Assembly (NCBI GenBank): GCA_037379345.1
Contig: CM074515.1
Span: 2,108,001-2,172,000, forward strand
Length of the DNA stretch: 64,000 nt
DNA from: Perna viridis
Taxonomy: Eukaryota
Direction of reading: 5' to 3'
The position numbers and the translations under genes are program-made. Positions 80 to 49,786 of the stretch are shown here, piece by piece (the stretch's first letter is position 1; each line of letters begins with the position of its first letter). The notes under the pieces were generated by a model, which was not told the DNA's origin, searched no databases, and saw only the letters and a list, made by a program, of their open reading frames with translations.

Positions 80-1320
80 AAACAAGAGGCTCCCATGAGC
101 CTGAATCACTCACCTGGTTAAATTTTTGCCTTTTAAGGGCAATAACTCTAACATGGAGTTGTCAGGCAATTTTGACTCCATTTGATTCATTGGACACATT
201 TGTAAGCCTTATAATAAGGATCATTTCAGCAACTGAAAGCTATTGGCTAAACGTAACAGATTTGGAGATGTATACAAAAATCTGCTGTCTGACCCCATTG
301 TTCTATTTTTAAAAAGGGCAGCCATGTTTTTTCAGCGACAAAAATTTGTCATTTCATTAAGGATACTCTAAAAAACAAAAAGAGGCTCCCAGGAGCCTGA
401 ATCACTCATGTGGTTGAATTTTGCCTTTCAAGGGCAATAAATTAGACAAGAAATTGTCCAACAATTTGGACTCAAGAAACCTTTGATAGGATTTATCATA
501 AGGATGGTTTCAGTAAATGAAAGTCTAAATCTATCATAGTTTTCAAGACATTGGCTGAATACTGTAGGAAAATAAAAAACAGTCATTTTCCCCTGTCAAC
601 GGCAATAACTCTTATAAGAAAGCATCTGACAAATTTTATGCCTGAAGACTTTTGTAGTCCTAAAAATAAGGATAATTTCAGCTATTGAAAGAATTTGGCT
701 AAATCTAACAGTTTTGAGATATATGCGAAAAACTACTGTCTGAACCCTATGTTCTATTTTTAGTAACAGTGGCCATGTTTTTCGACGGATCAAAAAAACC
801 CACTTGAATTCTATGCAGGATACCCCAAGAAACACTTATACCGAGTTTTGTTTTAATTGGTAAAATAGTGTAAGTGGAGAAGATTTTTGAAAGAAATAAC
901 ATTAAAAATAACAAAAAACTTTGAAAAAGGGCAATAACTCCAACATGGCTTAATAGATTAAAATGAAAATTTGACCACAGATAGATCTCATCATGCTGAC
1001 CACTTTAACCCCGTCAGAATTTGGATAAACCTAACGGTTTTGGAGATATATGAAAAAAACTACTGTCTGACCCCTACATTCTATTTTTAGTAATGGTGTC
1101 CATGTTTTTCAACAGACCATAAATCCCCAAATCAGTTCTATGCAGGATACCCATAGGAACATTCATACCAAGTTTGGTTCAAATTGGTCACATAGTTTCA
1201 GAGGAGAAGGTTTTGAAAAATTAACAACAATGATAACAGACGACAGACGATGACAACGACTACAACGGACACCAAGTGATGGCAATAGCTCACTTGGCCT
1301 TTGGCCAGGTGAGCTAAAAA
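80..1320. mobile_element. Helentron-associated (HINE/DINE-1-like) non-autonomous element with internal degenerate tandem units
   Basis: ACAAGAGGCTCCC..GAGCC start repeated near 80 and 375, GACGAC microsatellite, terminal hairpin AGCTCAC..GTGAGCTAAAAA; related pieces elsewhere in the window. Family name from general knowledge of bivalve repeats. Confidence 0.55.
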
Positions 1321-1427
1321 TAAGTGTACTAAGAAATACCTGGCAGAAAACAAAACATCATTTTACATGCACTCAACATTTATGGTCTTGATTTGAAGTT
1401 ATAACTTTAGATATATTACAATTTCAA

Positions 1428-1555
1428 TCAGATTTGTAACAATCTTTCTGATTGGTTTGTTGTTTTTGGGCAATTCAGATTATTTTGTATAATCTGGATT
1501 GGTACTGTGATGGCATGTTCTTCAACTGGTCTTTGGTACATTAAATAATCGCATA
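1428..1555 (-). CDS. Candidate terminal coding exon (ICDYLMYQRP...LLQI*)
   Basis: tttatttag acceptor at 1556, phase-compatible 42-codon frame to TGA; no clear polyA signal seen. Confidence 0.25.
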
Positions 1556-1821
1556 CTAAATAAAGCTTTGATTAAGAATTAACTCTGTACTTGGACTGGA
1601 ATCCATTATAAGGATTGTATTTAATTTCTGAGCAAGCTATGATTTCATAACCAACTCCGAGACAATTTACAATTGTTAACAAAAATGCTTTTTTGGTTCA
1701 TAAACATAACCTTTCCTCTAAGTTGGTTATATCACAGATATTGGTCAAAAAACAATCCTTATAAAGAAATGATATCTTACAAATATAACCACATGTTCCT
1801 GAGACAGAGTAAAATACTAAC

Positions 1822-2049
1822 TGATGTTCCTAGTACTAATGCACTGCCTGGTGTGGGGATCAAACACCTCTGATTTAGAGCAATGCTGAACAGATACAGT
1901 CCTGTTCTGTTGGCACAGTACATACATATCTGTCCATAACTTTCCAGTAAAGACCTGCTGCCCATCCTGTTTGCCTACACAGCTAGACAGGCGATCTTGG
2001 CAAGGTTCACAAGTAGGATCATTGTAACAAATGTTCTGTATATATTCAC
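1822..2049 (-). CDS. Array exon B21
   Basis: EYIQNIC..CQDRLSSC..CQQNRT; 228 nt; donor A|gttagt. Confidence 0.87.
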
Positions 2050-11000: not shown

Positions 11001-14000
11001 ACCTTTGTGTTGCTAGTTATACCCCTGCTTACAACATACAACACCTTTGTGTTGCTAGGGATACCCCTGCTTACAACATACAGCACCTTTGTGTTGCTAG
11101 GGATACCTCTGCTTACAACATACAACACCTTTGTGTTGCTAGCAGGTGTATCTTTTAGTGATTATTTCCTTTTTTATAGAATCCAACAGTTTCATAAGAT
11201 ACTTAACCATTATATCAAGTTTGAAATAAAATACTTTGAAAGGAGGAATTGTGATTACAAGTTTTGGAATAATATTAAGTTAAAGTTATTGTATCCATCA
11301 ATAACTGTATTGCTTCATGCATTTTGTATGTGGGGTACTTATAAATATTTAAATCAATGATTTCTTTGGATCACATTTCCATATGACCATACTATGCAGT
11401 GCATGTATTTCCATGAACATGTTTTCTTTATCACTTTTAAACCTAAAGTTATTTTCTTCAATTTGATAGTAATTAAGCACTTTAACAACTAAGATCAAAC
11501 ATTTTCCTGACCATGGATTTGTGTATTAGGAACATTTTAAAAGGTAACAACTACATACAGAATAACAGATTGCAAATTTGAATGACTTTGTAAATAGAAT
11601 AAGTGTCATAAATTTATGAACATGACCCTACCTGGTTGAACTTTCTTCATACATGTATTCAGTCTGGGGTTAAAATACTCATCTCTAGCACACTGTGTTA
11701 CATTAACAGTCCTGTTCTTATAACAGACAATGTACTCTGTCATCCAAAGTTGTACAGGAACTGGGCGTTTCCCATCAGGAAGGCCTACACAGCTTGGTAG
11801 TCGGTCTGGACATTGAGTGCACGATATATCCCCAGGGGTACATAAGTTCTGCTGATATTCACCTACAACCACAAACAGACATCAAGTTTTAATATCACAT
11901 TTTCTTTCTTTAACACCATGTCATCACAAAAAGAGGATAGAAACTTGAAGTAAAGAAGACAACTACCACAATTCTGAAAAATATAACACTTTAAACCAGA
12001 ATAGTAGAGTCAAACCTTTTCCTAGCAACCACCTGTATACAGCAATAACCTATTAACAACCACCTGCATACAGCAATAGCCTGTCTTAGCAACCAACTGT
12101 ATACAACAGTAACTTCTTAGAAACCACCTGTATACAACAGTAACTTCTTAGAAACCACCTGTATACAACAATAACTTCTTAGAAGCCACCTGAATACGGC
12201 AATAACCTGTGTTAGCAACCACCTCTTCACCAAAACCTGTATACGGCAATAACCTATCTTAGAAACCACCTGTTTACACCACCTGTTTACAGCAATAACC
12301 TCTAAGCAGCCACCAGTATACAACAATAACCTCTTAACAACCACCTGTATACAGCAATAACTTCTTAATAACCAACTGTATACAACAACAACCTGTCTTA
12401 GTAACCACCTGTATACAGCAATAACTACTTAGAAACCACCTGTATACAGTAATAACCTCTTAGAAACCATCTGTATACACCAATAACCTCTAACCAACCA
12501 CCTGTATACAGCAATAACCTATTAACAACCACCTGCATACAGCAATAGCCTGTCTTAGCAACCAACTGTATACAACAGTAACTTCTTAGAAAACACCTGA
12601 ATACGGCAATAACCTGTGTTAGCAACCACCTCTTCGCCAAAACCTGTATACAGCAATAACCTATCTTAGCAACCACCTGTTTACAGTAATAATTTCTTAA
12701 AAACCAGCTTTATGCAGCAACAACTTCTTAGAAACCACCTGTATACAGCAATAACCTCTTAACAACCACTTGTATACAGCAATAACTTCTTAGAAACCAC
12801 CTGTATACAGTAATAACCTCTTAGAAACCACCTGTTTACAGCAATAACCTCTAAGCAGCCACCAGTATACAACAATAACCTCTTAACAACCACCTGTATA
12901 CAGCAATAACCTCTTAATAACCAACTGTATACAACAACAACCTGTCTTAGTAACCTCCTGTATACAGCAATAACTACTTAGAAACTACCTGTATACAGTA
13001 ATAACCTCTTAGAAACCATCTGTATACAGCAATAACCTCTAACCAACCACCTGTATACAGCAATGACCTCTTAACAACCACCTGTATACAGCAATAACCT
13101 CTTAGCAACCACCTGTATACAACAACAACCTGTCTTAGTAACCACCTGTATACAGCAATAACTACTTAGAAACCACCTATATACAGCAATAACCTATTAG
13201 AAACCTCTTTGCAATCACCTGCATACAGCAATGACCTCTTAGAAACCTGTAAACCTGTCTAAGCAACCACTGTATACAGCAATAACATGTATTAAAAACT
13301 ACAAACTTACATGGAGCTTTTGGTTCAGTCCTATTTGGACAACTGACACTTTCAAACACTGAGCACTGCATGGTATTGAGATCAAATAGGTCAGGATACC
13401 GACACTCCATGTGGTATGTAGAGATCTTCATTGGTGACATAGAACGTGTTCTGCCAGCTGACATAGAACAGTTATAGTATCTACCACAGTTGTCAGGATC
13501 TGGTAGAATGTCTCTAGGATTAGCTCCGCAGTAGTCAGGTACATCAACTGTAACATTCATAGACATAAACTCAAATAACAAATATTTTAAGTCGATTAGT
13601 AACTTTAGTATAAATGTAAGTGAATTAAAGACACAATCAAAGGCTCCAGGAAGCCTGAAATTTGTCCGATTTGTTAAGGTGTTTGTACTCTGAGTGAGTA
13701 CTCTATTGAGGTAGTTAGAGTGAGTATTCTATTGAGGTAGGTACAGCTCGTTGCCTTTTGTCTGATTTGTTAAGGTGTTTGTACTCTGAGTGAGTACTCT
13801 ACTGAGGTAGTTTGAGTGAGTATTCTATTGAGGTAGGTACAGCTCGTTGCCTTTTGTCTGATTTGTTAAGGTGTTTGTACTCTGAGTGAGAACTCTATTG
13901 AGGTAGGTTGAGTGAGTACTCTATTGAGGTAGGTTGAGTGAGTATTCTATTGAGGTAGGTACAGCTCGTTGCCTTTTGTCTGATTTGTTAAGGTGTTTGG

Positions 14001-17000
14001 ACATTAATATAACAACAGTGAGCAAGTTTACTAAGAGAATGGACTTCATGCACATCTACATATAATACCCAACCTCCCTATAAAATTTCATCAAAATCTC
14101 TTGAGTGGTTTAGGAGGAGTTGTGCTTACAAGAAATGTGGACAGACAGATGGACAGACAGGGTGGTTCCTATATACCCCTACAAACTTAGTTTGCATGGG
14201 GTATAGTAACAGCAGATAACTTTTATTAGCAGTTAAAAAGCAAAAAAAAATAATAAAAACAAGATGTTGGTATTAGTCAAACTAATGGAAGACATAAACC
14301 AAACAAAACAAAAAAAAACAAAAAATGTCTTTTATTTTTCAGAATGAATATGAAAGAAGATGAAAGAAATATGAGACTTCACATCAGTATCATTTAAACA
14401 TTAATGGCTGTCAAGGTTTATGCTTGATTCCAAAAGTGCTTGAGATCAATTTAAGTGACAATCCTCTATAGCAGGTTTAATAGAAGATTGTGGAAAAATG
14501 TTAGTGAAAATAACATTACACATCCAATGACAGAATAATAGAAGTCAGAGACTCCAGGTACATAACAGGAAATTTTACCATGATAGACTTCTACAATAGT
14601 CATTAGCACTCCATTATATATGAAGGACAAACAGTTTATGTAAGTATATAGCAAGTGTACATACCAGTGAACCACTAGTGTACCTCAGTATAGAGTACGT
14701 GCACATACCAGTGGACCACTAGTGTACCTCAGTATAGAGTATGTGCACATACCAGTGGACCACTAGTATACCTCAGTATATAGCAAGTGTGCATACCAGT
14801 GGACCACTAGTGTACCTCAGTATAGAGTACGTGCACATACCAGTGGACCACTAGTGTACCTCAGTATACGGCAAGAGTACATACCAGTGGACCACCAGTG
14901 TACCTCAGTATATAGTAAAAGTACATACCAGTAGTGTACCTCGGTATACAGCAAGTATATATACCAGTGCACCAATAGTGTACCTCAGTATACAGCAAGT
15001 GTACATACCGGTGCACCACTAGTGTACCTCAGTATACAGTAAGTGTACACACCAGTGGACCACTAGTGTGCCTCAGTATATAGTAAGAGTACATACCAGT
15101 GGACCACTAGTGTATCTCATTATATAGTAAGAGTACATACCGGTGGACCACTAGTATACCTCATTATATAGTTAGTGTACATACCAGTGGACCACTAGTA
15201 TACCTCTTTATATAGTTAGTTTACATACCAGGTTTAACCTCTGTTGTACAGATCATCTTCCTGGGATGGAAGTATCCATTTGTACATTTAGTTATCTTTA
15301 TGGTTCTGTTTCTGTCACATTCAATGAAGTCAGATTTCCACATCCTACTGGGAAATGGATTTGCTCCATCAGGGAGACCAATACATGAAGGTAATCTATT
15401 AGAACAAGAGACACAACTTGCATTGGATGCTGGACAAACATTCTGCACATATTCACCTGAAGTAAAAATAATTATATTTAAACTTGTTTTATCACTTCAT
15501 GATTTTACAATTGATCAAAACTACACAAAAGTTACAGTCATGTTTTGCATGTAAAAGCAGACATACACCATTTTAGTAGTACAATTTTAGAGGTAATGTC
15601 AAATCAGGCATTAAGGATACATCATCATACCCCCAAAACTTTGAAGTACCACTAAACCTTTGTTTTAATTGACTATCATGCTTGCCTGGCTCACACAGTA
15701 CCTTATAGAACTTTCAGAAATAAATACTTACAAGGTGCCATTGGTTCATGTTTACCTGGCTCATACAGTACATTATAGAACTTTCAGAAATAAATACTTA
15801 CAAGGTGACTTTGGTTCATGTTTACCTGGCTCACACAGTACCTTATAGAACTTTCAGAAATAAATACTTACAAGGTGCCATTGGTTCATGTTTACCTGGC
15901 TCATACAGTACATTATAGAACTTTCAGAAATAAATACTTACAAGGTGCCATTGGTTCATGTTTACCTGGCTCATATAGTACATTATAGAACTTTCAGAAA
16001 AAAAATACTTACAAGGTGCCATTGGTTCATGTTTGCCTGGCTCACAGTGTACATTATAGAACTTTCTACACTTCATTACAGTAGCATCAAACAGGTCTGG
16101 ATAGGTACACTCCTTCATGTGGTGGCCATATTTACTTTGATCAGAACAGTTATAATATTGTCCACAGTTCACTGGATTTGGTTTGATCATTCCAGGATTA
16201 GCACCACATACATTGTCTACATTGTCTGTAACATATATAAATGTTGATGGTAATGTGGAGGGCAATAATACTGTAATTTAATGACTGGGGTCAGCTCTTA
16301 TAGTAAGTTAAAATTTTAAGCTTGACAAATTGTGAACTTAAAAAAAACTCAAATTAACATAAAAATAATGAAAGTGGCAGGAACAGATAAACAGACAGAT
16401 GGCCAGACACCGTGAACATTATATACCTCCTGATTTCCAAGCAGGGTGGGAATGGGGTATAATAAATGATAGGTTTGTATGAAATAGTGAAGTATGCTGT
16501 GGACAAAATATCTTGTTGACAGAATATTAATTTTACTTAGATTTATATTGATACCCACTACAAAATCACAATATATTCTATATCTTTAAACTTACTTTTA
16601 TCAACAGCATCCATACACTGCAATGTGACAGGATTGAAGACAGATCCTGGTGGACAGTTCCGTACTGCCATTGTACGATTCCGTAGACAGGTGACATATT
16701 TACTGCTCCACAAAGCCATCAGGAAGGGTCTGTCACCATCAGGTATTCCACGACAACTTGGCAGCCTTTCAGGACAAGGTTTACATGCTTGATCCCCCTG
16801 AGAACATTTGTTCTCTTCATATTCACCTGAAAATAGCAACAAGGCATTTTATGTAGGCTAATGTAGGCTAAACCCTCAAAACTAACCAGGATTCCAGTGT
16901 GTGTCTAAAACATAATATATGAGGGAATCAACAAAGTCAAAAATAAAAAAAAAAAGCTCCATGTATTTTACTTGAACAAGAACTATAAAATGTGTAGCAG

Positions 17001-35000: not shown

Positions 35001-38000
35001 GATACATTCAGATATATCAGCAGATTTTCCTGTCATATTCTGAGAACAGTTGTAGTACTTGGCACAGTTTGTAGGATCAGGAATCATAGCTGTAGGATGG
35101 GTGGAACAGTAATCTGGTACATCAACTGAAAAGGTAAGAGACACTACAGAAAAACAATCCATTCTCCATAATGCTTTGTAATCAACATAAAAACTGAGTA
35201 AACATTAAGAAAATGATTAAATAAAGTAGTTATGCTAGGAAAAAAAAAACACTACTAAAATTATTTTTTTTAATTGGTAACAACTGAATAATTGATGGAT
35301 TGATAGATGGATTGATTGTTGTTATACGCCTTATGGCATATATTCCATGCTTTCAAAGACAAATCAAACAATAAGCCAGGTCATCATTGCTAACAGAAGC
35401 AACAACTCACAGGTCCCTGAAATACCACATGCTTGGTGGAGAAGCAGTGACTACCATTTTTAAAGTCTTCTGTGTGATTCAGCCTTGGTTCTATTCCGCA
35501 ACCATCTGCACTCATCGTAGACCACACAACCTAAGATAACCAAGGTAGTTGACAGTAAATTGCATTTGAAAGGAAACTACTCCAAGTTTGTGTATGCCTC
35601 TCTTTGAAACTTCATAAAAATTCTGCTAACTAAACAGCATAAACTCTTACCTGTAGGTACATCCTTGGTACATTTGTGCAGTCTTGGATTGAAATATTCT
35701 CCCAGTGGACACTGTTTTACTTTCATAGTTCTATTTTTATAACATTCAATGTAGTCTGCCTGCCACATTTTGGTGGGAAATGGTTGTTCCCCATCAGGTT
35801 TCCCCACACAGGATGGTAGTCTGTCAGGACAATGGGCACATGTTGTGTTGCCAAAGGAACATATATTCTGTTGATATTCACCTGAAATTGCATCCCCAAT
35901 ATTTTTGTCATCAAATTAGTACCTTCAATACAGGCATAAACAGAAATTGAAGAACATGCTTTGCTGTGAGTAGCTTGATATGACCACAGAGCCGGAACCC
36001 TGAACAGTTTTGGCAAGTATTGACACACTATTCAAGCTTCATACAGCTCTTAATTTTGATTGTTATTAAATATTTGACACAAGATAAGAATTTCACCAAA
36101 AGCAAAGTGGCCCCTTTTTGGTGCTTCATCATAAATCAATCATAGCCTTCCTTCCAAGGTATGGCCTTCCTGATACAATTTCAAAAAGATCTATTCACTT
36201 AAACCAAGTTATTTTCCAAACAACAAAAAATAATTGTATATTCCCCTTTCTAGTCTCTAATTCCTAAACAGTTACAGTCACAACCCCCAATAATCAGTCA
36301 AAGCCTTCCTTTTGTGGTATTTAACCTTGTGGTATGTACGATTTAAAAGTGATCCATTCACTTCTAGTCAAATTATTGTGTGGACCTTATCAAAAGCCCA
36401 TTTGGGCCCCCATTGGAACCCTTACTCCCGCATGGTTTAGGTCACAACTAAAAAAAAATCCCAGCCTTCATTTCATGGTATGGCACCTTGTGGTACAATA
36501 ACAAAGAGATTAATTCATTTATTGAAGTTTGGACATCATGAAAATGTGTTTCTGGTGCATTATTGGCCCCTTATTCCCAAGGAGTTCATGTCCCAACCCC
36601 AAAAATCATACATTTTGTGGTATGACACCTTGTGATACAATTATAGTAAGATCCATACAATTTACAAATATACTCAAGTTATTATCTGGAAACTTAACTG
36701 TCTATGGATGCTGGATGATAACAATGTCAACAATGCAGATGACAACAGCATGATATGATTATTTGACTGCAATTTTTTTTTCATAAACAGCTGTACTTTT
36801 GGTCTACATAGAATAATCTCAACCATGTGATACTCAAATAAAGTTTGCACCACATGAATAAATTCCAATCATTCCCATGCAATTAAATTTTAAATGAAGG
36901 CAATTACAAGTAAATCAACAAATGACCATACACATGGTATGTCTATGTGGTAATAAACAAAACAACCAATCACAAACATTGTTACATCCAAAATTAAATA
37001 ATACACACCTAATACTTTTAAGTATATCTCAAGTTATGTTTATGCAGAATATACCAATACTTTAGATAAATACCATTGAATTGGGTATTACTATAACTAT
37101 ATTCCAATACATTAGATATATACCATTGAATTGGTATTACTATAACTAACAGAAATATATAACAGACTTATATAAAGTAAAACCTGGGTTGGTTAATATT
37201 ATGTAAAACTATACTGAACCTGACTTGGATGCATCATCAGACCATAGATCTAAACATACATTATATAAATGTGGGGCACAAAATTACTTACATGGAGCCT
37301 GTGGTTCTGGTTTCTTATCACAGTTGACTTTTTCAAACTTGTTACATTTTTTTATACTATCATCAAACAGATCAGGGTATTGACACTCCTTCCTGTAGTT
37401 GCCTGGCAGCTGTCCTGTTGCTCTCTTAATCATAGTGGTTGTAGGATCAGAGCAGTTAAAATAGTGAGCACAATTATCTGGGTCAGGTAGGACATCACTG
37501 GGATGGGCTTTACAATAATCTGGTAAATCAACTGAAAAAAAAAGTTCTCTCTGGTAAACTGTAACTGACAGTATGTAACTTTAGTACTGCCTACTTTCCT
37601 ACCTTTCCATGAGCTGTCTATTTAACTTAGCATCATTATTGCGGCTACAAGTGGGGTAGAATAGTAATAAGCCTGTCACACAACTTCATGAAAAATGATA
37701 AAGATTACTGTTCAAAGGCAGTTTAATGACCAGAAATAAAAACAATATACTTATTTGGTGTGAATCAGAAAAATGCTCGATACAGCCTTGTGTTTTATCT
37801 CAACAGTAAGCCTCATTCATATACAAAAAAAAATGTATTGAGTATATACACTGTTATTGTCTGAGTAGGTATTTATCTGTAAATAAATTGTCAACAAAAC
37901 TGTTCTATGTAACACCAGCTATTCTCCCAATGTGCACTTAATATCAGCAATACCTTTATCAACTGGAGTTTTACATTTCTTCTGTCTGGGATGGAAGTAT

Positions 38001-41000
38001 TGGTTTGGGGAACATTTCTGTATTTGTATTGTCCTGTTTTTATAACATGTAATGAAGTCAGCCATCCAAAGTTTAGTTGGAAAAGGTTGTTGTCCATCTG
38101 GTTTTCCAATACAGCTTGGTAATCGTTGTGGACATGGTTTACATCCTGTACATTGATGGTTCTGATTGTATTCACCTACAAATATTCTCAAAACATTGAC
38201 TACCTAGGAAAGTACTGTAATAACATCAGCATAGGTAATATAAAAATAGGAGATGTGGTATGATTGCCAATTAGACAGCTATCCACCAAAAGCCAAGCAA
38301 TGAACAATTAAAATTCTACAGGTCACCACACAGTCTTCAATGGTGGACAAAACCCAGACCATAAAGCAAGCTGTAAAAGGCCCCAAAATAAATGAAGAGA
38401 AACTATTCATAAGAGAAGAATATTGACCTAATCTAGAGGAAAAAAATAAAACAAATAACAGTGAACATAAAAAACAATGACAACCACTGGACTACAGGTT
38501 CCTGGCTTGGGACAGGCACATAAAGTATGTGGTGGGTTTTAAAATGTTTGTGAGCGCTCAACCCTCCCCTAACTTGGGACAGTGGTGGGAAAATACAATA
38601 ATAAAACAAACTATAATTTAGGTTTAACTCTTGAGATATATACAAAATACAAACACTTCAACAAATAGGACAACAGACAACAAGGTGTATCTACCTCGAT
38701 AGAGTACTCGCTTTTTCTGTAAGCTGGTTCAAGATCCAAAAGCACACCTCATTTACAGACAAAAATATCAATAAAAACGTGTCCAACAGAATTTAGTGAA
38801 ATTATATCACAAAATGTCAAAGTAAAACAAGGTCATCATGCAAATGCCAAGATAAAAAGCAATGATGTCCATATAATGTTACGTGGAATTTGTTAATCTT
38901 GAACTTTGTGAAGGAACCATTAAGTGCCACCAACCTACTAGAAAACATGTAATAGAGTCCCTTAGTAAAGAACTTATTAATTAATTGATCATACAGTTGT
39001 CTGTATGTTAACCAACTTGATTAAGTAAGCCAGAAATTATAGCAATTTATACCATGAAATCAAAACTAAGAGCCACTGCGTAATAGAAAGTGTGAGAAAA
39101 TACATCCCAATCACCAAAAAAAAACTAAAGGCCCTAGATCGCTCAACTTTGAACTTATCTCACCTTATGAATATTTGAAGCCATCTAGGAATAAAAAAAA
39201 ATATTCAAATGATTGAAATCTTTTTTCTAACTGCTACAGTTCTTAAAATATAAATCAAAAAATGCAAAAAATGCTAATTTTTTAACTTTCAAGTGTAGTT
39301 ATTCCTTACAGCAGTCTTTTCTTCTAACAACTCAACTGAATCATTTGTAGGGCTGATTATAAGGATACATTTATAATCTGAAAGTTTCTTTCAGTATTAC
39401 CTGTATGATTTTCATAATAATGGCTAAAAACTGAAAATACAATATTTCACCTAAGGTCTATATCTGTATACTTACATGGTGCCTGAGGTTCTGTTCTGTT
39501 ATCACATTGGACCCCAGTAAAGTTACTACATTTCCATGTAACTTTAGAGAACAGGTCTGGGTACTGACACTCATGGGCCTTAGTTCCATCAGAACAGTTG
39601 TAAAACTCAGCACAATTTGTAAGACTAGGGATAACAGACCTAGGATTGGCCTTACAAAAGTCTGGTACTTCCTCTGCAAAACAATGTGACTTTTTAAATA
39701 AATGATACAAAATCTAACCAAAGCACAGAAGTAACAGGAAAGTATTGTACACAATCTCAAACAAAACATATGATGAGTCAATGCCAAAATAAAGTGCCCT
39801 TTAAGACAGATCATACTTTAAAATTAAAATGAAAACAAATCCTGATATCCTAGTATATGTACATAGTTTATTTTCTGTTGCAGTCATAATAATACCATAA
39901 TGTCACAAAATAATGCTATAAAATCTCAGGAAGTTTATCAAGGATAGCCCATTGATTCAGAAGTTTATCAAGGATAGCCCATTGATTCAGAAGGGTTTAA
40001 CTGATCATCACAAAATATGATCATTGTTTTAATAGTTATACTGGGGAAATCATTTTTATTGGTACAGCCAAACAGTAAATTTTCAAAAAAAAATACTATA
40101 TTTTGTGCATAATAAGCAAAATATTGGTCCTGTTTCATTGATTTTTTAAATTATTGGTATGGTAGGAACAGTACCAACTGTACTGATTCCTTTACCCGTG
40201 AGTTGTAAGTACAAATGTAGTATGACAACCCTAGTTCTACCATTGGGTTACCTTTCAAAAATTGAGAGAAATAATAATTTATTAAAATGTAATAGCATGC
40301 TTCCATTTTAGACGAAAATTCATGAACACTAACTAAAATTGAGAATAGTGAAAAGTAGTGGGAACCTGGTAAAAATGGACCCCTGACTCTAATATTATAA
40401 TGTGCATTTAGCTAAAAAAAATCAGGTACAATACAACTGAAAGCTTTATCATAAAGATGACTAATATCTATCGATTAGCAAAATCATATATACAAAAAAA
40501 TCTTCTCAAACAAGATCATTTTTGGAAAAAGGATAATTCTTGAAAAGGTAAAAGTCTCACACAAAAATCATACAGTGATTTAACCAATTTCAGGTGCAAC
40601 CTATGTCCAGTGCAATCACAAATTTGGATTTTTTGGTAGCAAAAAACAGGAGCCTGCATGGTGAAATTGAGGACAAACCACTTTTTTCAATAATATGTTC
40701 TCATTACACACAACAAAGAAAACAATTAATTGAAAACTGAAAAAAAATCAGTAGTTTTTCGTACTTAAATTCATTTTTTCTCCAAAAAGCAGCTCATACA
40801 GAATACTTGAATTAATAATAAACTTTATGAAAGAATGTTGGGAAATCAGAATAAATGTATAAATATTTCTGTAAAAGTTATACCACTGTCATATCATGCT
40901 CAGTCATGAAAATATTCATATGTGTGATTATCCAATGTGTGTTAATATGTTGCTTTGTAATTCTTTATATTACATGCCATAACTATGGCAAGCCAAAGTG

Positions 41001-44000: not shown

Positions 44001-47000
44001 GCATTCGAGAGGCATTACAAAAACGAATATATAAAGCATGCAAAGAAAACGTAATAGGCCGACTTATTGGCCTTACGACCTTCGTCAAGAGCGCGGTAAC
44101 TTGAACACAGAGAGCAACCAAAATATAGTAAACTGAGCCTGGGAGTAAAAATAATCCTTTATTTCAACCACTGAGCTGTATTTATAAAACGGCTAGCATT
44201 TTCATTCTTAGCTTATATGTCAAGATTATTTATGTATTTATCTTATGTCGACTGAATTAAGCCGTTCATCTTTGGAACAACCAACTGATGGGAGTTTAAT
44301 TGGCAACAGTATCAGTGATCATAAAAAGGTTTTGATCCATGTATGCACTTATTTTTCAAATAACTGAAAAAGGTTTCACTTACAAGGAGCCATTGGTTCT
44401 TTCCTTTTATCACAGGTGACTGTTGTGAAGTTCTCACATTTGCTTGTGACAATGGAGAACAGATCAGGGTAGGTACATTCTGTTGTTGCCGACTGTTTAC
44501 TACAATCGTGGTATTTAGCACAGTTGCGAATGTCTGGAATTTTGTCTTGTGGATGTTTTTTGCAGTAAAATCTTAAAACCGCTGCAATAATGAAAACATT
44601 ACTGAGAAGCTATGCAGAGCACCATAACAGGGCATCATAACAGAGCACCATGTTAAAAGTGACCTCTGAAAACAAATCCTTCCGAATAGGAAGTTACTTA
44701 ATTGTTTCCACCTTAACAAAGAAACTGGGATGTCTAAATGGAAAGCTTTTAAGCTGAATACAATGCCATAAAATTACCATTTACCATAATATACTATCTC
44801 TCTCCTTCTCTTCTTTTATTGTTATATATTTTAATTATATGCTGTGATGTCTGTCATATATTTTAAACAATAAGAGTAGACATTAAAGAGTTTTAAAACA
44901 TACAATATATACATAAAGTCAGACAGACAGACAGACTTACGTGCATTCATCGGTTTGCACACCCTTCCCCTTGGTTCGAAAAAGTAGCCAGGCTGACACT
45001 TCGTTATCTTCATTGTTCTATTTCTGTAACATTCGATGTAATCAGGTTCACCTCTTTTCCCTGGAAATTCCTGTTTTCCATCAATTTTCCCAATACAGCT
45101 TGGCAAGCGTTTTGGGCAATTGCAAGTAGGATCACTTCCGTTGCATTTATTTTGGACGTATTCACCTGGTCGTAAAGAGAAGAAAAAGGAACAAGCCTGG
45201 TGAAACGCAACAAATGCACCATCGTATAACCCATATATATATATTTTTTTAAATACTTACAAAGATCACCAAAACATCGTCAGTAAGTGTAAACATATCT
45301 TTAAGTAAGCCCTAAAAGGCCCCGACAACAAAAGTAATAAAATCCACGGTGACAGAACGATGACACCCCTTCAAAATAAACTGAAATGGATAATAACGGA
45401 ACGAAGACACATTAATGACCAACACTGACATTAGGGCGAAATCATTTTTTTTTATACTAACCAAGAATCATGCTGCAAGCCCAGCAGACAGTTTGGAATA
45501 GTGGACAAACATCCGACATTGATAAAATCTGATTAAGGCAATCACAAATCACAAAAAAACGTGCTTCAGAAGTGATTTTTACCAACTGAATTAACAAGAT
45601 TTTACCTAAGGTGTTCCAGTATAAAATATAATTGGGATAACTGTAAATAAGTATCGAGAAGATCTCTCTTTACTTGTAGAAGTGCAGTGTAACATTGAAA
45701 TCATTATGTAATCACTTTGATGCTTAAGAGAGACCACCAATATTTATGGACACAATTTGAAGTTATCAATGTACTTACAAGGGGCTTGTGGTTCTGGTCT
45801 TAAATTACATTTTACAGTCTCAAACTTCTGACATCTGTTTGTAACCGAAGAAAATAAATCTGGATAGGTACATTCTTTAAGGTAGTTTTGTCCTAAAGCA
45901 GATCTCTTGTGACCACAGTCGTAGTATTGTGCACAGTCTACAGGGTTAGGAAGTAATGCTCCTGGGTTGTTCTTGCACGCGATGTTGGGATCAACTAGAT
46001 AACATCAATGGTTATAAATTCTTAGTTCATTACAAAAGATGTTGTCATGTTCGTATAAGAGAGTACATTGAAACTATTTAAAATGTCTCTAATTTTTTTC
46101 TGAAGTAATTGTCCGGACTATACGTTGCTTGTTACACACATACGTAAAGGTTTAAGGATGGCCTAAGTTTTATATTATCATAATCCAACATGTATAAAAC
46201 TGTGATGCTTATGTTAAGTGCTAATGTTTTCATATAAAAAGTGTAGCAATACTCAGCTATATGACGAAAGAAATGGAATTTTTTCTATTGTAAAAATGAA
46301 GGAAGCCAAACTTACGTGGACAGTTAACACCTGTATCACATGGCTTTGTTTCTTGTTCATTTCCTGTACAATTTTTTCCATTATACATCGGCGCCGGATT
46401 GTCACATGTCCTGTTCCGTACAAACACCCCTTGGCCACAGGTTACTGAACAAGCTCCAGACCACGGACCCCATTGTCCCCAGTCCCCATCGACTGTTTCA
46501 GGTAAAAAAAAAACGTTTTGGGTTGTGTTTTTTTATGATTCGAGGATTTTAAGAAGAGAAATATTGAATTCCAGGAGGAAGTGATAATTGTTAGTGTGTG
46601 GTGATACCGAAAATGACGATGAAGCACTGGCACAGGATTATACACAAAATAAATGTACTTTGACCCTTTAATATCAGCTTGAAATGTTTGACTTCGGTCG
46701 CATGCTTCGTGTTATTTGCTGTTTCTGTTATTGTTTCTTACCTCAAAGATAGAAATAATGAGTATCTTTAACAATTGATTCCTTCATTTCTATTGCTCAA
46801 CTTATTTGAAACATTTAGGCTGTATAACACTAAATCAGATACATTACAAAAATGTAGTTTGGACAACTTACTTGGTGTGGGATCAGTGCAGTCTTCGTCA
46901 ACACGCCCATCGCCATCATCATCTAAAATAGAACTTAGTGTTACAATTAAAAAAAGGCATTGGAAATTGCTTGTTTTTAATCAAATGAAGTTAAAAGCGT

Positions 47001-49786
47001 AAAACAAGTGAAGATGACTCGATTACGGTTTAAACATTAGCGAAATATATATGGTGTTATTTGAGGAAAAAATCTGAACGTAATAGATTTTGTAATTTCC
47101 GATCAGTAGAAGTAAAACAATGATACATTAACAATATAAACACCTGTTTTCATATTGTCTACGGTACAGAGTTCTTCGTCTATCTTGCCATCACAGTCGT
47201 TATCTAGCCCATCACCTTTCACTGTCGGCGTCGGTTTACATGGCTGTAATATAGAAATACAATCTAAAGATCTTGAAAAGACTATAATCTACAAAAAATT
47301 CCGTGTTCATATAACAAGGAACTCTTTAATGTTAAAAAGAAAAGGTAGTACTATTATAGTCGTAAGAGCATTCAAGTTTCCTCAAAATATCGTTATCCAG
47401 AAATAATGACCACGTCTCAGCGTAAACATGACATACAGCAGGACAAGAAAGTCAAATACGGTCATTATAAGTGGTTGACCGAACATTCCGAAAATCATTT
47501 AGTGCAACTAATTCTGCCATTTTTCATTGTACGGTATTTGATTTTTGTGCGTTTTCGAATATGGCTTTTGCCCTTTTAAGACTGGAACTTAGTCTACATA
47601 AAGACAAATATCTTGAAAAAGAAAATTAGTAAAGTTGAACTGCCTTTTATTCTACTCACCGCATTAATTTTTGCCAGTCTCATTCCTGTAGGAAAAGCAT
47701 ACGATTCATGGTATGCATGTCCATACAGATAACTTCCAAATATTGTATACGAGTCTTTGTGCACTACTTGATGAGAACCTTTAGGAATATCTACGTATGT
47801 TCCGACGAGAGACGTTCCTTCAATCGGGTTCCATTTTGTTCCTTTAGGTAAAGGTTTGCCATCCAATAACAAACCATCTTTTTTAGACGCATCAATAACC
47901 AACAGAATTTGATTTTCATATTTAAAGTACTCCGGGTGGGAGTATTCTGGAGTGGCGAAAGTATAACCCGAGTTGAACAACTCGTAGGGCGGTATAATCA
48001 TCATGGACGGATCGGCAGGTTCAAATTTGTTTAATTGACTGAGAACAAATTGCGCCATAAATACAGGCTTTGTAGCATTTATAGATTTATAAGAACTAGA
48101 AGGCAATGTGATTTGTTTCCAGTCACCAGCTTTGGCAAGAGTAAATGAGGGCATACCTGCAATATTGACAACTGTATTGTCTTCACTTGCCACAACACGA
48201 AAGTAATCCCCTACTGTTCGTTTTGGGATAGGAGCCGTTACAAATTTTTTACCCCAGGTATCAACAGGGGTAAGTTGTTCAACAAGATGGTCTTGAAATT
48301 TGCCTTGACCTATGTTCGTTTTAATGTTACCACTATATGCGGATATAGGTTTGTTGCTTTCAATATGCGCCCCTGTTAAATCTCCTACACTCTGTAATTG
48401 GAAGTTTTCATACTTGTCTAGATTCACAGTTATTTTGTCTCCTCCATGGTAAGTTTTCCCTTCAAAAGTAACAGACATATTTATTGCATTTGGCAATGTT
48501 ACGGTGACGACAGTTCCGTCTTGTGTGGCAGCAACACCGAGTTCAGTTTTACGAAATGCTGGTCCATAACACATTGCATAGTACTCGTTGCCGAGGGCGT
48601 CAGTGGGTATCCCACAGAACACGTCGTTAGAATAGTCCTCCTTATTCCCTCCATAGAAAGCAATATCTCCGTCTGACTTAATTAACAACGTTTTCGATGA
48701 TTTCACACTGCCTTTCATTCGGAACTCGTCACTTATATTTAATCTGACGACTTGTCCCGGTTTGACAGTAATAGTTTCTGATACAGGAGGCTGTTTCCAC
48801 TTGGGAGAAGTGATATGAACTTGAACAGGGTGTTTCTCTGACGTTGTTACATACAGTTCAAGGGGAAATATTGTTCCATACTCATCATTTTCCATGAAAG
48901 ACGCAATGAATTCCCTGCCTATATTGTCAGGGGGGCCTATAGAGATAAAGATGAAAACCACAATTGATTTGTTTTTGTCTTAGTGCCGTACTACTATGTG
49001 CTAGTTTTGTTATAGCGTAATATGATTCTGACATGACGAAACGCTCACGTCATTTTTTTGTGTTTGCTTTACACTATATAGTAAAGTGAAATATTTCTAC
49101 TATTAAGTGTCAGTCTTTGTAAGAATCAGGCATAAGTAAAACATGGTATGATAAAAACCACCATTTTAATAGTGAAGTTTGACTATTTGCACGATCAGAA
49201 TCAAACGGAAAAAACAAGATTTTCCATATCATGTTGGTACATCGAGATAAAATTTCATTGAAATGCACTATAAATGAACATAACTGTCAAAAACCTCATT
49301 TTTGCCACATTCTATTTAGAAATTTACGAGCAAATCCAATGATGTAGAGATCAAATAATGGGTCTTTTCAAATAGAGGAAGCACCTTGAGTGGAATTATA
49401 TTGTCAGATCGGTGGGGTTTTGTCATGTATGTTTCTGATTTTTCATATTTAGCCTGATTCTTACAAATATTCACGCTTAAATCATGCTACCTGTGTTGTA
49501 TTTTTGTTAATGTGAGTGGTTCTCTTTTTTTTGTTTTTTGTTTTGCTGTTTTTCAGGGGACGATTTTTAATCAGTTATGAGTAACAAGTCGCGTGGCTGT
49601 ACACTGACATTCCTTTGGTGCAGTAATATCATAGCAAACAGATCACCGAAATTTGTTAAAATCCGATAAAACTTACAAACAATGATGATTTATGACGGAC
49701 AGTTTTATCACAGAAGATGACTTACCTTGCCCGAAAGACAAAGTGAACCACGTAATGAGTACTAATAGCTTCCGTTCTACCGCCAT
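1822..49786 (-). CDS. Giant secreted multidomain protein, 47 coding exons seen: signal peptide, IgGFc-binding N-terminal domain, acidic Cys/Asp motifs, TSP1, then 21 x (A-type + B-type chitin-binding type-2-like domain); ~3,690 aa, 3' end uncertain
   Basis: All exons have GT-AG boundaries with compatible phases and join into one reading frame; summed exon length 11,065 nt by hand. Domains recognised from motifs, not from a database search. Confidence 0.88.
2516..2728 (-). CDS. Array exon A21
   Basis: TIPEYCKAHP..NCVQYYNC..ECPYPDMFS; 213 nt. Confidence 0.87.
2952..3179 (-). CDS. Array exon B20
   Basis: EYVKNLC..CPGRLPSC..CDRNRT; 228 nt. Confidence 0.87.
3281..3413. repeat. 33-bp minisatellite x4
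   Basis: AGATACTGTCAAGCCAGCTTGTGTTATATTACA. Confidence 0.9.
4245..4457 (-). CDS. Array exon A20
   Basis: DIPDYCQSH..NCGHYFNC..ECKYPDLFS; 213 nt. Confidence 0.88.
4769..4996 (-). CDS. Array exon B19
   Basis: EYEQNLC..CSSRLPSC..CYRNRT; 228 nt. Confidence 0.88.
5247..5385. repeat. 46-bp tandem repeat x3 containing the A19 exon end and donor
   Basis: Donor CTTAC (plus strand) ends at 5268, 5314 and 5360. Confidence 0.9.
5361..5573 (-). CDS. Array exon A19
   Basis: NLHSYCQANP..NCAKYIDC..YGDYIKECKYPDLF; 213 nt. Confidence 0.87.
5879..6443. repeat. 32-bp minisatellite x~17 with 160-bp higher-order period
   Basis: CTATAGCTGAACAACCATAGGTTTAACATGTA; variant order recurs at 5881, 6041 and 6201. Confidence 0.92.
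7009..7239 (-). CDS. Array exon B18
   Basis: EYNQNLC..CQSRLPSC..CLTNRTIAVRHC; 231 nt. Confidence 0.88.
7862..8065 (-). CDS. Array exon A18
   Basis: DVPPYCQANP..NCGRYYNC..ECTYPDLY; 204 nt. Confidence 0.88.
8305..8633. repeat. 82-84-bp tandem repeat x4 containing the B17 exon end and donor
   Basis: Donor ACTAAC ends at 8330, 8414, 8498 and 8580. Confidence 0.92.
8581..8802 (-). CDS. Array exon B17
   Basis: EYDVNAC..CPDRLPSC..CYKNRT; 222 nt. Confidence 0.86.
9183..9428 (-). CDS. Array exon A17
   Basis: DVKEYCKTNP..NCAHYYNC, 24-aa loop, ECTYPDLY; 246 nt. Confidence 0.88.
9898..10125 (-). CDS. Array exon B16
   Basis: EYTQNQC..CPGRLPSC..CYKNRT; 228 nt. Confidence 0.88.
10382..10482. repeat. 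19-bp minisatellite x5
   Basis: CAGTATTGAYATTCCTTGT. Confidence 0.8.
10638..10832 (-). CDS. Array exon A16
   Basis: DVQEYCKVH..NCAKYYNCSNAQHQEC; 195 nt. Confidence 0.88.
10891..11142. repeat. 42-bp minisatellite x6
   Basis: CTAGGGATACCCCTGCTTACAACATACAGCACCTTTGTGTTG. Confidence 0.9.
11632..11862 (-). CDS. Array exon B15
   Basis: EYQQNLC..CPDRLPSC..CYKNRT; 231 nt. Confidence 0.88.
12022..13286. repeat. ~31-bp minisatellite x~40
   Basis: TTAGAAACCACCTGTATACAGCAATAACCTC and variants. Confidence 0.92.
13311..13547 (-). CDS. Array exon A15
   Basis: DVPDYCGANP..NCGRYYNC..ECRYPDLF; 237 nt. Confidence 0.88.
13661..14000. repeat. Composite ~95-120-bp tandem repeat x3
   Basis: TTGTCTGATTTGTTAAGGTGTTTG plus nested GAGTGAGTAYTCTATTGAGGTAG subunits. 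Confidence 0.85.
14035..14206. mobile_element. DINE-1/HINE-like end fragment
   Basis: GGACAGACAG microsatellite followed by hairpin TATACCCC..GGGGTATA; similar ends near 16385-16462 and 28470-28540. Confidence 0.45.
14645..15217. repeat. ~43-bp minisatellite x13 abutting the B14 donor
   Basis: GTACATACCAGTGGACCACTAGTGTACCTCAGTATA... Confidence 0.9.
15229..15456 (-). CDS. Array exon B14
   Basis: EYVQNVC..CSNRLPSC..CDRNRT; 228 nt. Confidence 0.88.
15676..16066. repeat. 70-bp tandem repeat x5 containing the A14 exon end and donor
   Basis: Donor CTTAC ends at 15731, 15801, 15871, 15941 and 16012. Confidence 0.92.
16013..16225 (-). CDS. Array exon A14
   Basis: NVDNVCGANP..NCGQYYNC..YGHHMKEC; 213 nt; alternative in-frame acceptor 9 nt inside. 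Confidence 0.86.
16596..16826 (-). CDS. Array exon B13
   Basis: EYEENKC..CPERLPSC..CLRNRTMAVRNC; 231 nt. Confidence 0.88.
17115..17309 (-). CDS. Array exon A13
   Basis: DVPDYCKAHP..NCAKLYNCTDGQHKECTYPDLY; 195 nt. Confidence 0.88.
17684..17914 (-). CDS. Array exon B12
   Basis: EYVQNLC..CPQRLPSC..CYKNRT; 231 nt. Confidence 0.88.
18139..18366 (-). CDS. Array exon A12
   Basis: DVPGYCKANP..NCAHYFDC..ECTYPDLFD; 228 nt. Confidence 0.88.
18879..19106 (-). CDS. Array exon B11
   Basis: EYEQNQC..CPDRLPTC..CYKNRT; 228 nt. Confidence 0.87.
19383..20317. repeat. 52-bp minisatellite x~18 with 260-bp higher-order period
   Basis: TGGGCCTTTCTCTATAGAAATGATCAGAAACACCAGACCATCAATATTTTAC; variants AGACTATC at 19631/19891 and TAGCCC at 19701/19961. 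Confidence 0.93.
20490..20729 (-). CDS. Array exon A11
   Basis: DIPQYCIAHP..NCAHYYNC..ECPYPDLYD; 240 nt. Confidence 0.88.
21195..21506. repeat. Degenerate ~55-58-bp repeat containing the B10 exon end and donor
   Basis: TTACCTTTGGGAACATCA..GACATTTCTGAGTCAAATGACAT units; donors at 21474, 21416, 21362 and weaker ones beyond. Confidence 0.75.
21475..21708 (-). CDS. Array exon B10
   Basis: Near copy of B6; 234 nt. Confidence 0.87.
22538..22750 (-). CDS. Array exon A10
   Basis: Near copy of A6; 213 nt. Confidence 0.88.
24327..24557 (-). CDS. Array exon B9
   Basis: Near copy of B5; 231 nt. Confidence 0.88.
24937..25149 (-). CDS. Array exon A9
   Basis: Near copy of A5; 213 nt. Confidence 0.88.
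25452..26167. mobile_element. Second degenerate copy of the HINE-like element
   Basis: AAACTAGAGGCCCC..GCTCACTTGG start and CTCAC..GTGAGCTAA end; further relics near 23040-24095, 26570-27000 and 39125-39440. Confidence 0.45.
26194..26424 (-). CDS. Array exon B8
   Basis: DYQQNLC..CPDRLPSC..CYKNRT; 231 nt. Confidence 0.87.
27159..27398 (-). CDS. Array exon A8
   Basis: Near copy of A4/A7; 240 nt. Confidence 0.88.
28600..28830 (-). CDS. Array exon B7
   Basis: Near copy of B4/B8; 231 nt. Confidence 0.87.
29969..30208 (-). CDS. Array exon A7
   Basis: DVPDYCQAHPSDVLPDPDNC..; 240 nt; near copy of A4/A8. Confidence 0.88.
30985..31337. repeat. ~57-bp repeat x6 containing the B6 exon end and donor
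   Basis: Donor-like sites end at 31020, 31077, 31135, 31189, 31247 and 31305. Confidence 0.85.
31306..31539 (-). CDS. Array exon B6
   Basis: EYLQNKYAC..CPKRLPSCVGHPDG..CYKNRT; 234 nt. Confidence 0.87.
32462..32674 (-). CDS. Array exon A6
   Basis: NIDAFCQANP..TCGQYYNC..YGHHLMECQYPDLF; 213 nt. Confidence 0.88.
33040..33243 (-). mobile_element. tRNA-derived SINE fragment
   Basis: Minus strand reads GTGCTCACCTTAAGTGAGGTAGATCATGGGTTTGAACCC..CCAAAGACT (B-box-like head plus core); related relic at ~35295-35545. Confidence 0.5.
33481..33711 (-). CDS. Array exon B5
   Basis: EYDQNLC..CPKRLPSCRG..CLQNRTMAVRHC; 231 nt. Confidence 0.88.
34913..35125 (-). CDS. Array exon A5
   Basis: DVPDYCSTHP..NCAKYYNC..ECIYPDLFS; 213 nt. 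Confidence 0.88.
35651..35881 (-). CDS. Array exon B4
   Basis: EYQQNIC..CPDRLPSCVGKPDGEQPFPTKMW..CYKNRT; 231 nt. Confidence 0.88.
37292..37531 (-). CDS. Array exon A4
   Basis: DLPDYCKAHPSDVLPDPDNCAHYFNC..ECQYPDLFD; 240 nt. Confidence 0.88.
37954..38175 (-). CDS. Array exon B3
   Basis: EYNQNHQCTGCKPCPQRLPSC..CYKNRT; 222 nt. Confidence 0.88.
38240..38600. mobile_element. Abundant mussel-type interspersed repeat
   Basis: GATGTGGTATGATTGCCAAT..ATCCACCAAA start also present at ~51765-51820. Confidence 0.45.
39476..39673 (-). CDS. Array exon A3
   Basis: EVPDFCKANP..NCAEFYNC..ECQYPDLFS; 198 nt. Confidence 0.88.
40984..41797. mobile_element. Non-autonomous DNA transposon, IS3EU-like, filled with TTTTCTAATATTAGAAAA-type quasi-palindromes
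   Basis: 26-bp TIRs TATGG(C/T)AAGCCAAAGTGGA(C/T)AAAAAT with 2 mismatches; perfect 6-bp TSD CATAAC at 40978-40983 and 41798-41803. Confidence 0.8.
42428..42886. mobile_element. Second IS3EU-like non-autonomous element with a nested retro-derived repeat (~42535-42760)
   Basis: 23-bp TIRs TATGGCAC(C/G)CC(G/A)TATTTATATTT; flanks GAAGCG and GAAGCT (6-bp TSD, 1 mismatch). Confidence 0.7.
43622..43855 (-). CDS. Array exon B2
   Basis: EYDQNKC..CPDRLPSCVGLPDG..W..CYKNRT; 234 nt. Confidence 0.88.
44384..44581 (-). CDS. Array exon A2
   Basis: FYCKKHPQDKIPDIRNCAKYHDC..ECTYPDLFS..EPMAP; 198 nt. Confidence 0.87.
44941..45165 (-). CDS. Array exon B1 (Cys linker + 4-Cys CBM14 variant)
   Basis: EYVQNKC..CPKRLPSCIG..CYRNRT; 225 nt. 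Confidence 0.88.
45779..45994 (-). CDS. Array exon A1 (6-Cys CBM14/peritrophin-A-like)
   Basis: DPNIACKNNP..DCAQYYDC..ECTYPDLFS..RPEPQAP; AG/GT, 216 nt. Confidence 0.88.
46316..46492 (-). CDS. Exon: thrombospondin type-1 domain
   Basis: DGDWGQWGPWSGACSVTCGQGVFVRNRTCDNPAPMYNGKNCTG...C (WxxWxxW, CSVTCG, RxRxC); not represented in the ORF track in this frame. Confidence 0.92.
46872..46922 (-). CDS. 51-nt exon: DDDGDGRVDEDCTDPTP
   Basis: ttttag acceptor, gtaagt donor, phase 1-1, DxDGDG motif. Confidence 0.8.
47144..47243 (-). CDS. Exon: acidic motif PCKPTPTVKGDGLDNDCDGKIDEELCTVDNMKT
   Basis: cag acceptor, phase 0-1; DGxDNDCDGxxDE putative metal-binding repeat. Confidence 0.8.
47660..48936 (-). 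CDS. Exon: IgGFc-binding protein N-terminal-type domain (~425 aa)
   Basis: Motifs GREFIASFMEN, PTDALGNEYY, DLTGAHIESNKPISAYSGN, DHLVEQLTPVDTWGKKF, ADPSMMIIPP, ESYAFPTG; tag|GC acceptor and GCG|gtgagt donor. Confidence 0.92.
49107..49476. mobile_element. TTAA-flanked MITE (Kolobok/piggyBac-type target site)
   Basis: Imperfect TIRs with core TTTGTAAGAATCAGGC; TTAA at 49103-49106 and 49477-49480; related partial copy at ~57190-57312. Confidence 0.6.
49726..49786 (-). CDS. Coding exon 1: signal peptide MAVERKLLVLITWFTLSFGQ
   Basis: ATG in AGGATGG context, basic then hydrophobic stretch, donor AAG|gtaagt; phase 1 matches next exon. Confidence 0.8.

Follow-up and report, generated by a model that had tools for sequence, protein, structure and literature searches.

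Organisation of the locus

A gene model of 81 exons extends over ~85 kb of the minus strand of a mytilid mussel genome (C5:2,072,419-2,157,786). The window, that is, the whole stretch of 64,000 nucleotides that was analysed (C5:2108001-2172000 of a 723-Mb assembly; AT-rich, with a GC content of ~34%), covers the 5' 60% of this gene and 42 of its 74 domain exons, and the flanking genome was read for 50 kb beyond it. The part within the window comprises 47 spliced exons, all on the minus strand, which code for 3,688-3,702 aa depending on the donor chosen for exon 18, and it thus bears out an earlier sequence-only reading, which had described one frame of ~3,690 aa joining a signal peptide, an FCGBP_N head, Cys/Asp motifs, a thrombospondin type 1 repeat (TSP1) and 21 pairs of domains (Table 1). 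The same reading closed the array after 42 domains at position 1822, and in this respect it has to be corrected. Position 1822 was rejected as the end of the gene, since domain exon 42 has its phase-1 donor (A|GTTAGT) exactly there, and beyond the window the same strand continues with 32 further domain exons, in unbroken I-II order and with the same phase and borders, together with two LDLa exons. The TAG behind 1822 was likewise considered as a true stop and rejected; it sits directly after the donor at a conserved position, and since other type II donors also precede stops (CCG AAA G|GTAATTAA of pairs 6 and 10 is one example), it is not taken to terminate the frame.

Joined into one model, the exons give a frame of 6,124 codons (about 6,100 aa), which is stop-free in the frame check of a local script and ends in ...KDCLPLKYYGTFSINFV-TGA at C5:2072419. 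The predicted product of this model has a mass of ~690 kDa, a Cys content of 8.8% and 88 N-glycosylation sequons; the joined model served for frame and composition only, the Pfam, fold and family searches being run exon by exon. The intron after the signal-peptide exon and all introns from exon 3 (47243-47144) onward are in phase 1, and that between the head exon and exon 3 is in phase 0. All 74 domain exons have lengths that are multiples of 3 nt and are bounded by AG/GT borders, a pattern that crosses the edge of the window uninterrupted. Those inside the window (n=42, 195-246 nt each, from 45994 down to 1822) belong to two strictly alternating types and hence form the 21 pairs mentioned above, separated within the array as a whole by introns of 223-3,948 nt. 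The longest of these introns (3.9 kb), which is AT-rich, lies between domain exons 4 and 5, before pair 3, and includes a stretch with a GC content of only 0.245.

Table 1. Features of the gene and its surroundings. Positions refer to the window unless a C or L coordinate is given.
Feature	Position	Strand	Basis or remark
Exon 1, ATG (49786) and signal peptide MAVERKLLVLITWFTLSFGQ	49726..49786	-	61 nt, phase-1 donor G|GTAAGT
Exon 2, FCGBP_N / IgGFc_binding head, single 1,277-nt exon	47660..48936	-	Pfam PF17517
Exon 3, Asp/Cys-rich motif PCKPTPTVKGDGLDNDCDGKIDEELC	47144..47243	-	Sub-threshold MopE-like match
Exon 4, second acidic Cys motif DDDGDGRVDEDC	46872..46922	-	Reading frame, exon borders
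Exon 5, thrombospondin type 1 repeat	46316..46492	-	Pfam TSP_1
Pair 1	Type I 45994-45779, type II 45165-44941	-	Pfam, alternation
Pair 2	Type I 44581-44384, type II 43855-43622	-	Pfam, alternation
Low-GC stretch within the 3.9-kb intron	40001-42000		GC 0.245
Pair 3 (37954..39673)	Type I 39673-39476, type II 38175-37954	-	After the longest intron
Pairs 4-6 (31306..37531)	37531-37292, 35881-35651, 35125-34913, 33711-33481, 32674-32462, 31539-31306	-	
Pair 7 (28600..30208)	30208-29969, 28830-28600	-	
Pairs 8-10 (21475..27398)	27398-27159, 26424-26194, 25149-24937, 24557-24327, 22750-22538, 21708-21475	-	Exon 24557-24327 has an alternative donor at 24285
Pairs 11-13	20729-20490, 19106-18879, 18366-18139, 17914-17684, 17309-17115, 16826-16596	-	Pairs 11-15 span 11632..20729
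Pairs 14-15	16225-16013, 15456-15229, 13547-13311, 11862-11632	-	
Pairs 16-18	10832-10638, 10125-9898, 9428-9183, 8802-8581, 8065-7862, 7239-7009	-	Pairs 16-21 span 1822..10832
Pairs 19-21	5573-5361, 4996-4769, 4457-4245, 3179-2952, 2728-2516, 2049-1822	-	
First part of the intron to domain exon 43	1..1821	-	Exon 43 at L004:9184-8984, outside the window
Interspersed repeat	~370-1320		At least 88 genomic copies
Short tandem copies of the 3' end of domain exon 43 with the start of its intron	L004:8679-8979	-	Just past the window
Two LDLa exons after pair 32	L006:4780-4890 and L006:4285-4422	-	Outside the window, phase 1-1
Intronless Peptidase_M20 ORF	C5:2088101-2089642 (L005:101-1642)	+	Outside the window
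Next gene	L007:2345-588 and L010:8451-7434	-	Signal-peptide exon MKTFLFVI
Upstream neighbour	56347-58506	-	LRR_8, E 4.8e-29
Masked stretch, 132 N	55491-55622		
Paralogous array	C2:62515810-62533278	+	At least 11 type II exons
Further type II exons	C14:3667543-3684469	+	Three exons

The surroundings of the gene contain several other elements. In the upstream neighbour within the window, a leucine-rich-repeat exon precedes one that encodes a hydrophobic, TM-like stretch. Outside the window, the opposite strand carries an intronless ORF of 514 aa with Peptidase_M20 and M20_dimer matches; it is enclosed entirely by the intron separating exons 59 and 60 of the array, and may represent a nested gene or else a retrocopy. 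The repeat near the edge of the window is interspersed in the genome at 72-90% identity (85-90% for full-length copies), and its depth in the presumed-RNA contig sets runs into the thousands; just past the edge, the 3' end of domain exon 43, together with the start of its intron, is present in short tandem copies (GNRPEPQKPCKYYTAG, about three times over). The next gene on the same strand starts ~2 kb past the array with its signal-peptide exon; two of its exons together encode an F5/8 type C (discoidin) domain, another is rich in Thr and Pro, and a further one is a canonical CBM_14 exon (E 2.7e-8). An extension of the array gene into the discoidin (FA58C) exon 2.4 kb downstream, into which the phases would fit, was nevertheless rejected, since 300 bp upstream of that exon there is a clean first exon with ATG, signal peptide and GTAAGT donor.

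The N-terminal region and the LDLa pair

The domain families named in the sequence-only reading (IgGFc_binding, TSP_1 and CBM_14) were all recovered by Pfam, the last of them in the modules described below. The head exon matches PF17517 over profile positions 6-297 of 297 (214 bits, E 2.7e-63), and exon 5, which reads DWGQWGPWSGACSVTCG and has the W-x-x-W and Cys pattern, matches TSP_1 (PF00090) with 54.4 bits against a cut-off of 21.6 (E 1.5e-14). Between the two, the acidic Cys motif of exon 3 (GDGLDNDCDGKIDEELC) resembles a MopE-like metal-binding motif at a score below threshold (22.9 bits against a cut-off of 27), and the same motif comes after the head in the Tegillarca and Haliotis relatives. 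Judged by their sequence, the two acidic Cys motifs look like calcium-binding loops. At the other end of the molecule the two LDLa exons match PF00057 with 45.9 and 41.6 bits against a cut-off of 24.1 (E 6.8e-12 and 1.4e-10).

In a representative library the head family numbers 8,856 relatives, and a search of the PDB with the head sequence returned no match to a solved structure. The head fronts varied architectures, among them VWD/C8/TIL proteins, TSP1 arrays with LDLa, EGF/pentaxin proteins with three CBM14 domains and mucin-like TM proteins, in agreement with the finding of Lang et al. (2016) that FCGBP_N is N-terminal in many different invertebrate architectures (PMC4948705). Head-like exons number at least 28 genome-wide; one of them adjoins the array just upstream, and none lies within it.

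The composition of the remaining exons bears on how the head is to be interpreted. Neither VWD, C8 and TIL nor a VWA domain was found in any exon searched by Pfam, no exon between the ATG and the stop encodes a mucin-like Pro/Thr/Ser-rich region with VWD and cystine knot, and manual inspection of the ORFs revealed no chitinase domain or TM segment in the window, as the sequence-only reading had stated, or in the rest of the array. Vertebrate FCGBP is likewise a giant secreted protein of repeats that starts with a signal peptide and FCGBP_N; its tail, however, consists of VWD-C8-TIL units with GDPH autocleavage, of which the mussel gene has none. With a tail of CBM14 and LDLa domains in place of VWD-C8-TIL, the mussel gene is thus not an orthologue of FCGBP.

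The head had also been described as mucosal, and on this description a different function could be envisaged, in which the head would anchor the protein in mucus and the tail, at the surface of gill, mantle or gut, would capture microbes or particles containing chitin. The presence of FCGBP_N in a vertebrate mucus protein would accord with such a trap, as would a product that is secreted, multivalent, devoid of a TM segment and predicted to carry as many as 88 N-glycosylation sequons. Against this, no evidence ties FCGBP_N to mucin or mucus. In the paper on the structure of FCGBP the role of the N1 domain is called unclear, mouse FCGBP is found to be without N1 and attempts to reproduce IgG binding are said to have failed (PMC11796319), so that the head by itself gives no ground for postulating a mucus anchor. 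FCGBP_N moreover heads many unrelated invertebrate mosaics, TM proteins included (PMC4948705), and the mussel gene is without both VWD/C8/TIL and a PTS mucin region. The mucosal attribution is accordingly weak, given also the multiplicity of head exons in this genome, and we regard a mucus-to-chitin bridge or trap as very unlikely.

Two alternating module types

The whole array is built of 37 two-module units, each of type I followed by type II, making 74 modules. Type I, the first of the pair, reads DVPDYC...NCAxYYNC...ECxYPDLF...C..F..V.C..R.EPQAPC, and type II, the second, EYxQNxC...C.PCPxRLPSCVGLPDG...FP...W..DYI.CY.NRT....C..G..F.P....C. Type I satisfies the canonical six-Cys pattern of CBM14, C-x11-24-C-x5-C-x9-19-C-x10-14-C-x4-14-C, its Cys residues (alignment positions 6, 20, 26, 49, 62 and 70) being invariant or at least 90% conserved. 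Type II has seven Cys residues in the exon in addition to one whose codon is split T|GT across the border between the type I and type II exons, and the canonical second Cys is missing, departures which mark it as a variant of the CBM14 pattern. Since the number of Cys residues per pair is even, type I and type II probably form one structural unit together. A conserved sequon occurs in most modules, as N-R-T in type II (R and T invariant) and as N-C-S/T in type I.

Of both types 35 of the 37 copies match CBM_14 (PF01607) at E <= 0.01, with best E-values of 1.3e-7 for type I and 5.1e-8 for type II. Type II matches no other family, two type I copies match one DUF each (DUF5401 and DUF1459, E 0.001-0.007), and CBM_14 is the sole family matched by more than one copy. 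The scores of single exons (17-34 bits) straddle the cut-off of 22.1 bits, and orthologous multi-domain models reach 58-145 bits. Profile searches of the PDB yielded CBM14 proteins only, namely Aplysia EHEP (8in3), a chitinase CBM, squid beak CBP-3, Blo t 12 and CHIT1. AlphaFold models were calculated from the 37-copy alignments (pLDDT 82 and 74), and in Foldseek the best 11 matches listed for type II and the best 10 listed for type I are all CBM14 folds, including CHIT1, EHEP, Avr4, Der p 23, tachycitin and Blo t 12. The probabilities in these comparisons reach 1.00 and the query-normalised TM-scores 0.42-0.55, at E-values (0.018-1.2) that are weak, as is to be expected for domains of 50 residues. 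Comparison of the type II with the type I profile by hhalign gave a weak match (probability 36%, E 3.8e-4), and it is consequently on Pfam and the fold, not on their mutual similarity, that the common CBM14 nature of the two types rests. By these profile and model comparisons both module types are CBM14-like.

The exons of pairs 4-6 share 93-98% nucleotide identity with those of pairs 8-10, and the same holds for pair 4 against pair 7. The introns of these same pairs (4-6, 7 and 8-10) cannot be aligned, the likeness ending within ~20 nt of the exon borders. Near-identical exons separated by dissimilar introns suggest either gene conversion limited to the exons or old duplicates that have undergone intron turnover.

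One gene or several

Whether the locus is transcribed as a unit is a question to which the reading frame gives only part of the answer, because the domain exons are phase-symmetric and an open frame alone cannot prove a single transcript. Exons that are all of phase 1-1 would remain in frame in any subset, and this is compatible with two or more tandem genes, that is, a head gene followed by head-less CBM14 arrays, or with alternative splicing and exon skipping so heavy that much shorter proteins result. Head-less arrays of the same module types do exist, for example the paralogue at C2:62.52 Mb and a 755-aa model of Crassostrea virginica; neither the C2 array nor the three type II exons on C14 has an FCGBP_N head exon nearby. 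The annotation of Tegillarca likewise divides the array into at least five models. Contigs of four presumed-RNA runs covering the stretch of exons 41-43 consist of low-depth intronic or unspliced pieces, with very high depth at the repeat, and hold no splice joint, so that RNA-supported junctions number zero in the contigs examined.

Several observations speak against such a division. The alternation of types I and II is unbroken throughout, and a search of the array introns (exons 1-74, the two introns flanking the LDLa exons being scanned as one span) brought to light no credible signal-peptide exon from which a second gene might start, although the same scan does detect the first exon of the next gene (MKTFLFVI|GTAAGT) just past the array. 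The intron at the edge of the window (~2.6 kb) is of ordinary size within the range of the others. A search of the genome with the type II profile placed all 37 type II exons of the locus between C5:2072461 and C5:2153163. As for the Tegillarca models, they abut within 50 bp, and in long repeat genes split models are the usual artefact of annotation. On this evidence we consider it likely that the locus is one gene, and unlikely, albeit less so than the functional alternatives discussed elsewhere in this paper, that it comprises several genes or yields mainly shortened products. The alternatives to our interpretation are not all mutually exclusive, whether they concern the number of genes, a ligand other than chitin or a mucus trap.

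Relatives in molluscs and other animals

The nearest relative of the head is a fragment from Mytilus edulis (CAG2185511.1, 76% identity). In Tegillarca granosa the model KUTeg_006031 (KAJ8316017.1), whose head is 66% identical over the part retained, shares the head, the acidic Cys motif and TSP1 with the mussel gene and then goes on to one type I module and part of a type II module, where the model is truncated. The array continues in the next model, separated from the first by 50 bp, and four more CBM14-only models on the same contig match the pair unit (neighbours KUTeg_006023/24/25/29); types I and II alternate as in the mussel, in single exons that are phase-1-like. The pair unit is also matched by CBM14-only models of M. 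galloprovincialis, Saccostrea and Crassostrea virginica. The predicted bivalve orthologues measure 236-1,071 aa, every model being truncated or split; none reaches full length and none has the LDLa insert. By these sequence matches the gene is conserved in mussels, ark clams and oysters, in annotations that are fragmented.

Literature searches for the orthologues by locus tag returned nothing, the database entries being unnamed; searches on crystalline style and peritrophin and on tandem type-2 domains in mussels gave no match; and the architecture is absent from the limpet and snail mucus papers. The statement of the sequence-only reading that no protein of this architecture has been characterised thus holds in so far as no characterised orthologue was found, and needs qualification in so far as the split bivalve models, and an abalone protein with 23 such domains (PMC6003135), precede the present description. 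The latter, idb_1745 / CLC_2232 from the shell proteome of Haliotis laevigata, is a secreted protein of 1,932 aa with a signal peptide, annotated as 'similar to IgGFc-binding protein', its best database match, and carrying 23 chitin-binding type-2 domains; nacre and the prismatic layer both yielded it, at low abundance and with as many as 87 peptides (Mann et al. 2018, PMC6003135). The contexts of its peptides (...C.ACDETQLSCRGKADG; ALCAQDPSRPLPHKGHCAKYFE) resemble type II and type I modules, respectively, a comparison of short strings and not an alignment. It differs from the mussel product in being a gastropod protein of 1,932 aa, and the presence of a head is not stated (PMC6003135). Given its low abundance in the shell, the abalone protein could be trapped there from mantle secretions.

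Among other known systems, the peritrophins of arthropods and the cuticular CPAP/obstructor proteins are likewise secreted proteins with tandem peritrophin-A modules and have the same presumed action, the cross-linking of chitin fibrils. They contain from a few to about twenty modules, as against 74 here, and are without the FCGBP_N head, TSP1, LDLa and the alternating unit of two types. Pif and BMSP are, like the mussel product, mollusc matrix proteins with CBM14, but combine VWA (and LamG) with one to four CBM14 domains, whereas the mussel gene is without VWA. FCGBP_N itself has been lost in arthropods (PMC4948705). A third comparison is offered by EHEP of Aplysia kurodai (PDB 8IN3), also from a mollusc and composed of CBM14 folds only, which among solved proteins matches the two module types best; it has, however, three modules, a mass of 25 kDa and a location in the digestive fluid, and it binds phlorotannin, not chitin (PMC10619976).

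Proposed function

In the interpretation that we favour on balance, the predicted product is secreted into an extracellular matrix, where it would act as a multivalent cross-linker of chitin fibrils. Arranged as beads on a string, the modules would coat the fibrils and cross-link them, while the head, TSP1 and LDLa parts would dock other partners in the matrix or on the cell surface. A role in a matrix is suggested by the relative in the abalone shell proteome with its 23 chitin-bd_II domains (PMC6003135), and the most likely site would be a shell or periostracum matrix secreted by the mantle; the gut lining and, after it, surface mucus are further possible sites.

Chitin binding by the modules is probable as a prediction from their sequences and modelled folds, and is put forward as such, given that Aplysia EHEP, the solved protein closest to them, shows no binding to chitin. 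Neither does Der p 23, and the residues that contact chitin are not conserved across the CBM14 family (PMC10619976). The modules might therefore, in principle, bind a different ligand, such as polyphenols or quinone-tanned DOPA proteins, or serve as structural spacers, in which case the protein would be a scavenger of tannins or polyphenols or a scaffold of the periostracum or byssus. The main argument for such a function is that EHEP (8in3/8in6), which binds phlorotannin (PMC10619976), ranks first in the sequence comparisons of both types and first or nearly first in the fold comparisons. Identity to EHEP nonetheless amounts to only 19-22%, and the aromatic residues typical of CBM14 are kept in the mussel modules (YY before the third Cys and Y/F-x-P before the last). 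Most CBM14 arrays that have been characterised are, furthermore, chitin binders, and the abalone relative occurs in a shell matrix that contains chitin (PMC6003135). We accordingly hold a non-chitin ligand or a mere spacer function to be improbable, to about the same degree as the mucus trap, and retain the cross-linking of chitin as the working interpretation.

A more far-reaching version of this interpretation may be sketched. A single megadalton-class protein of 74 modules could represent a distinct molluscan class of chitin-matrix organiser, in which the two-module unit, a canonical module and an eight-Cys variant presumably linked via the border Cys, would measure or bundle the fibrils, with the FCGBP_N/TSP1 end and the LDLa pair tethering the assembly to epithelium or matrix. 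Taken in its entirety this proposal is speculative, and we rate it as quite unlikely, if slightly less so than the non-chitin and mucus alternatives.

Implications

Tandem CBM14 matrix proteins, FCGBP_N at the front of varied invertebrate proteins and a catalogued relative in abalone were all known. What is new is the scale of 74 modules, the fixed unit of two types, the addition of TSP1 and LDLa and the perception of the bivalve models as pieces of one giant gene. To our knowledge an array of 74 modules goes well beyond any CBM14 array or peritrophin so far described. Because the public annotations of bivalves cut the gene into fragments, it is invisible in current catalogues.

Mollusc shells and several linings of soft tissue have chitin as their framework, and few chitin-organising proteins other than Pif and BMSP are known. 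If the present interpretation is true, a conserved binder of ~690 kDa with 74 modules would be a strong candidate for a cross-linker or template of chitin in bivalves. The architecture puts FCGBP_N in front of a tail for which a ligand can be predicted, and, should the product indeed act as an organiser of chitin, this enigmatic domain would for the first time be placed in a functional context.
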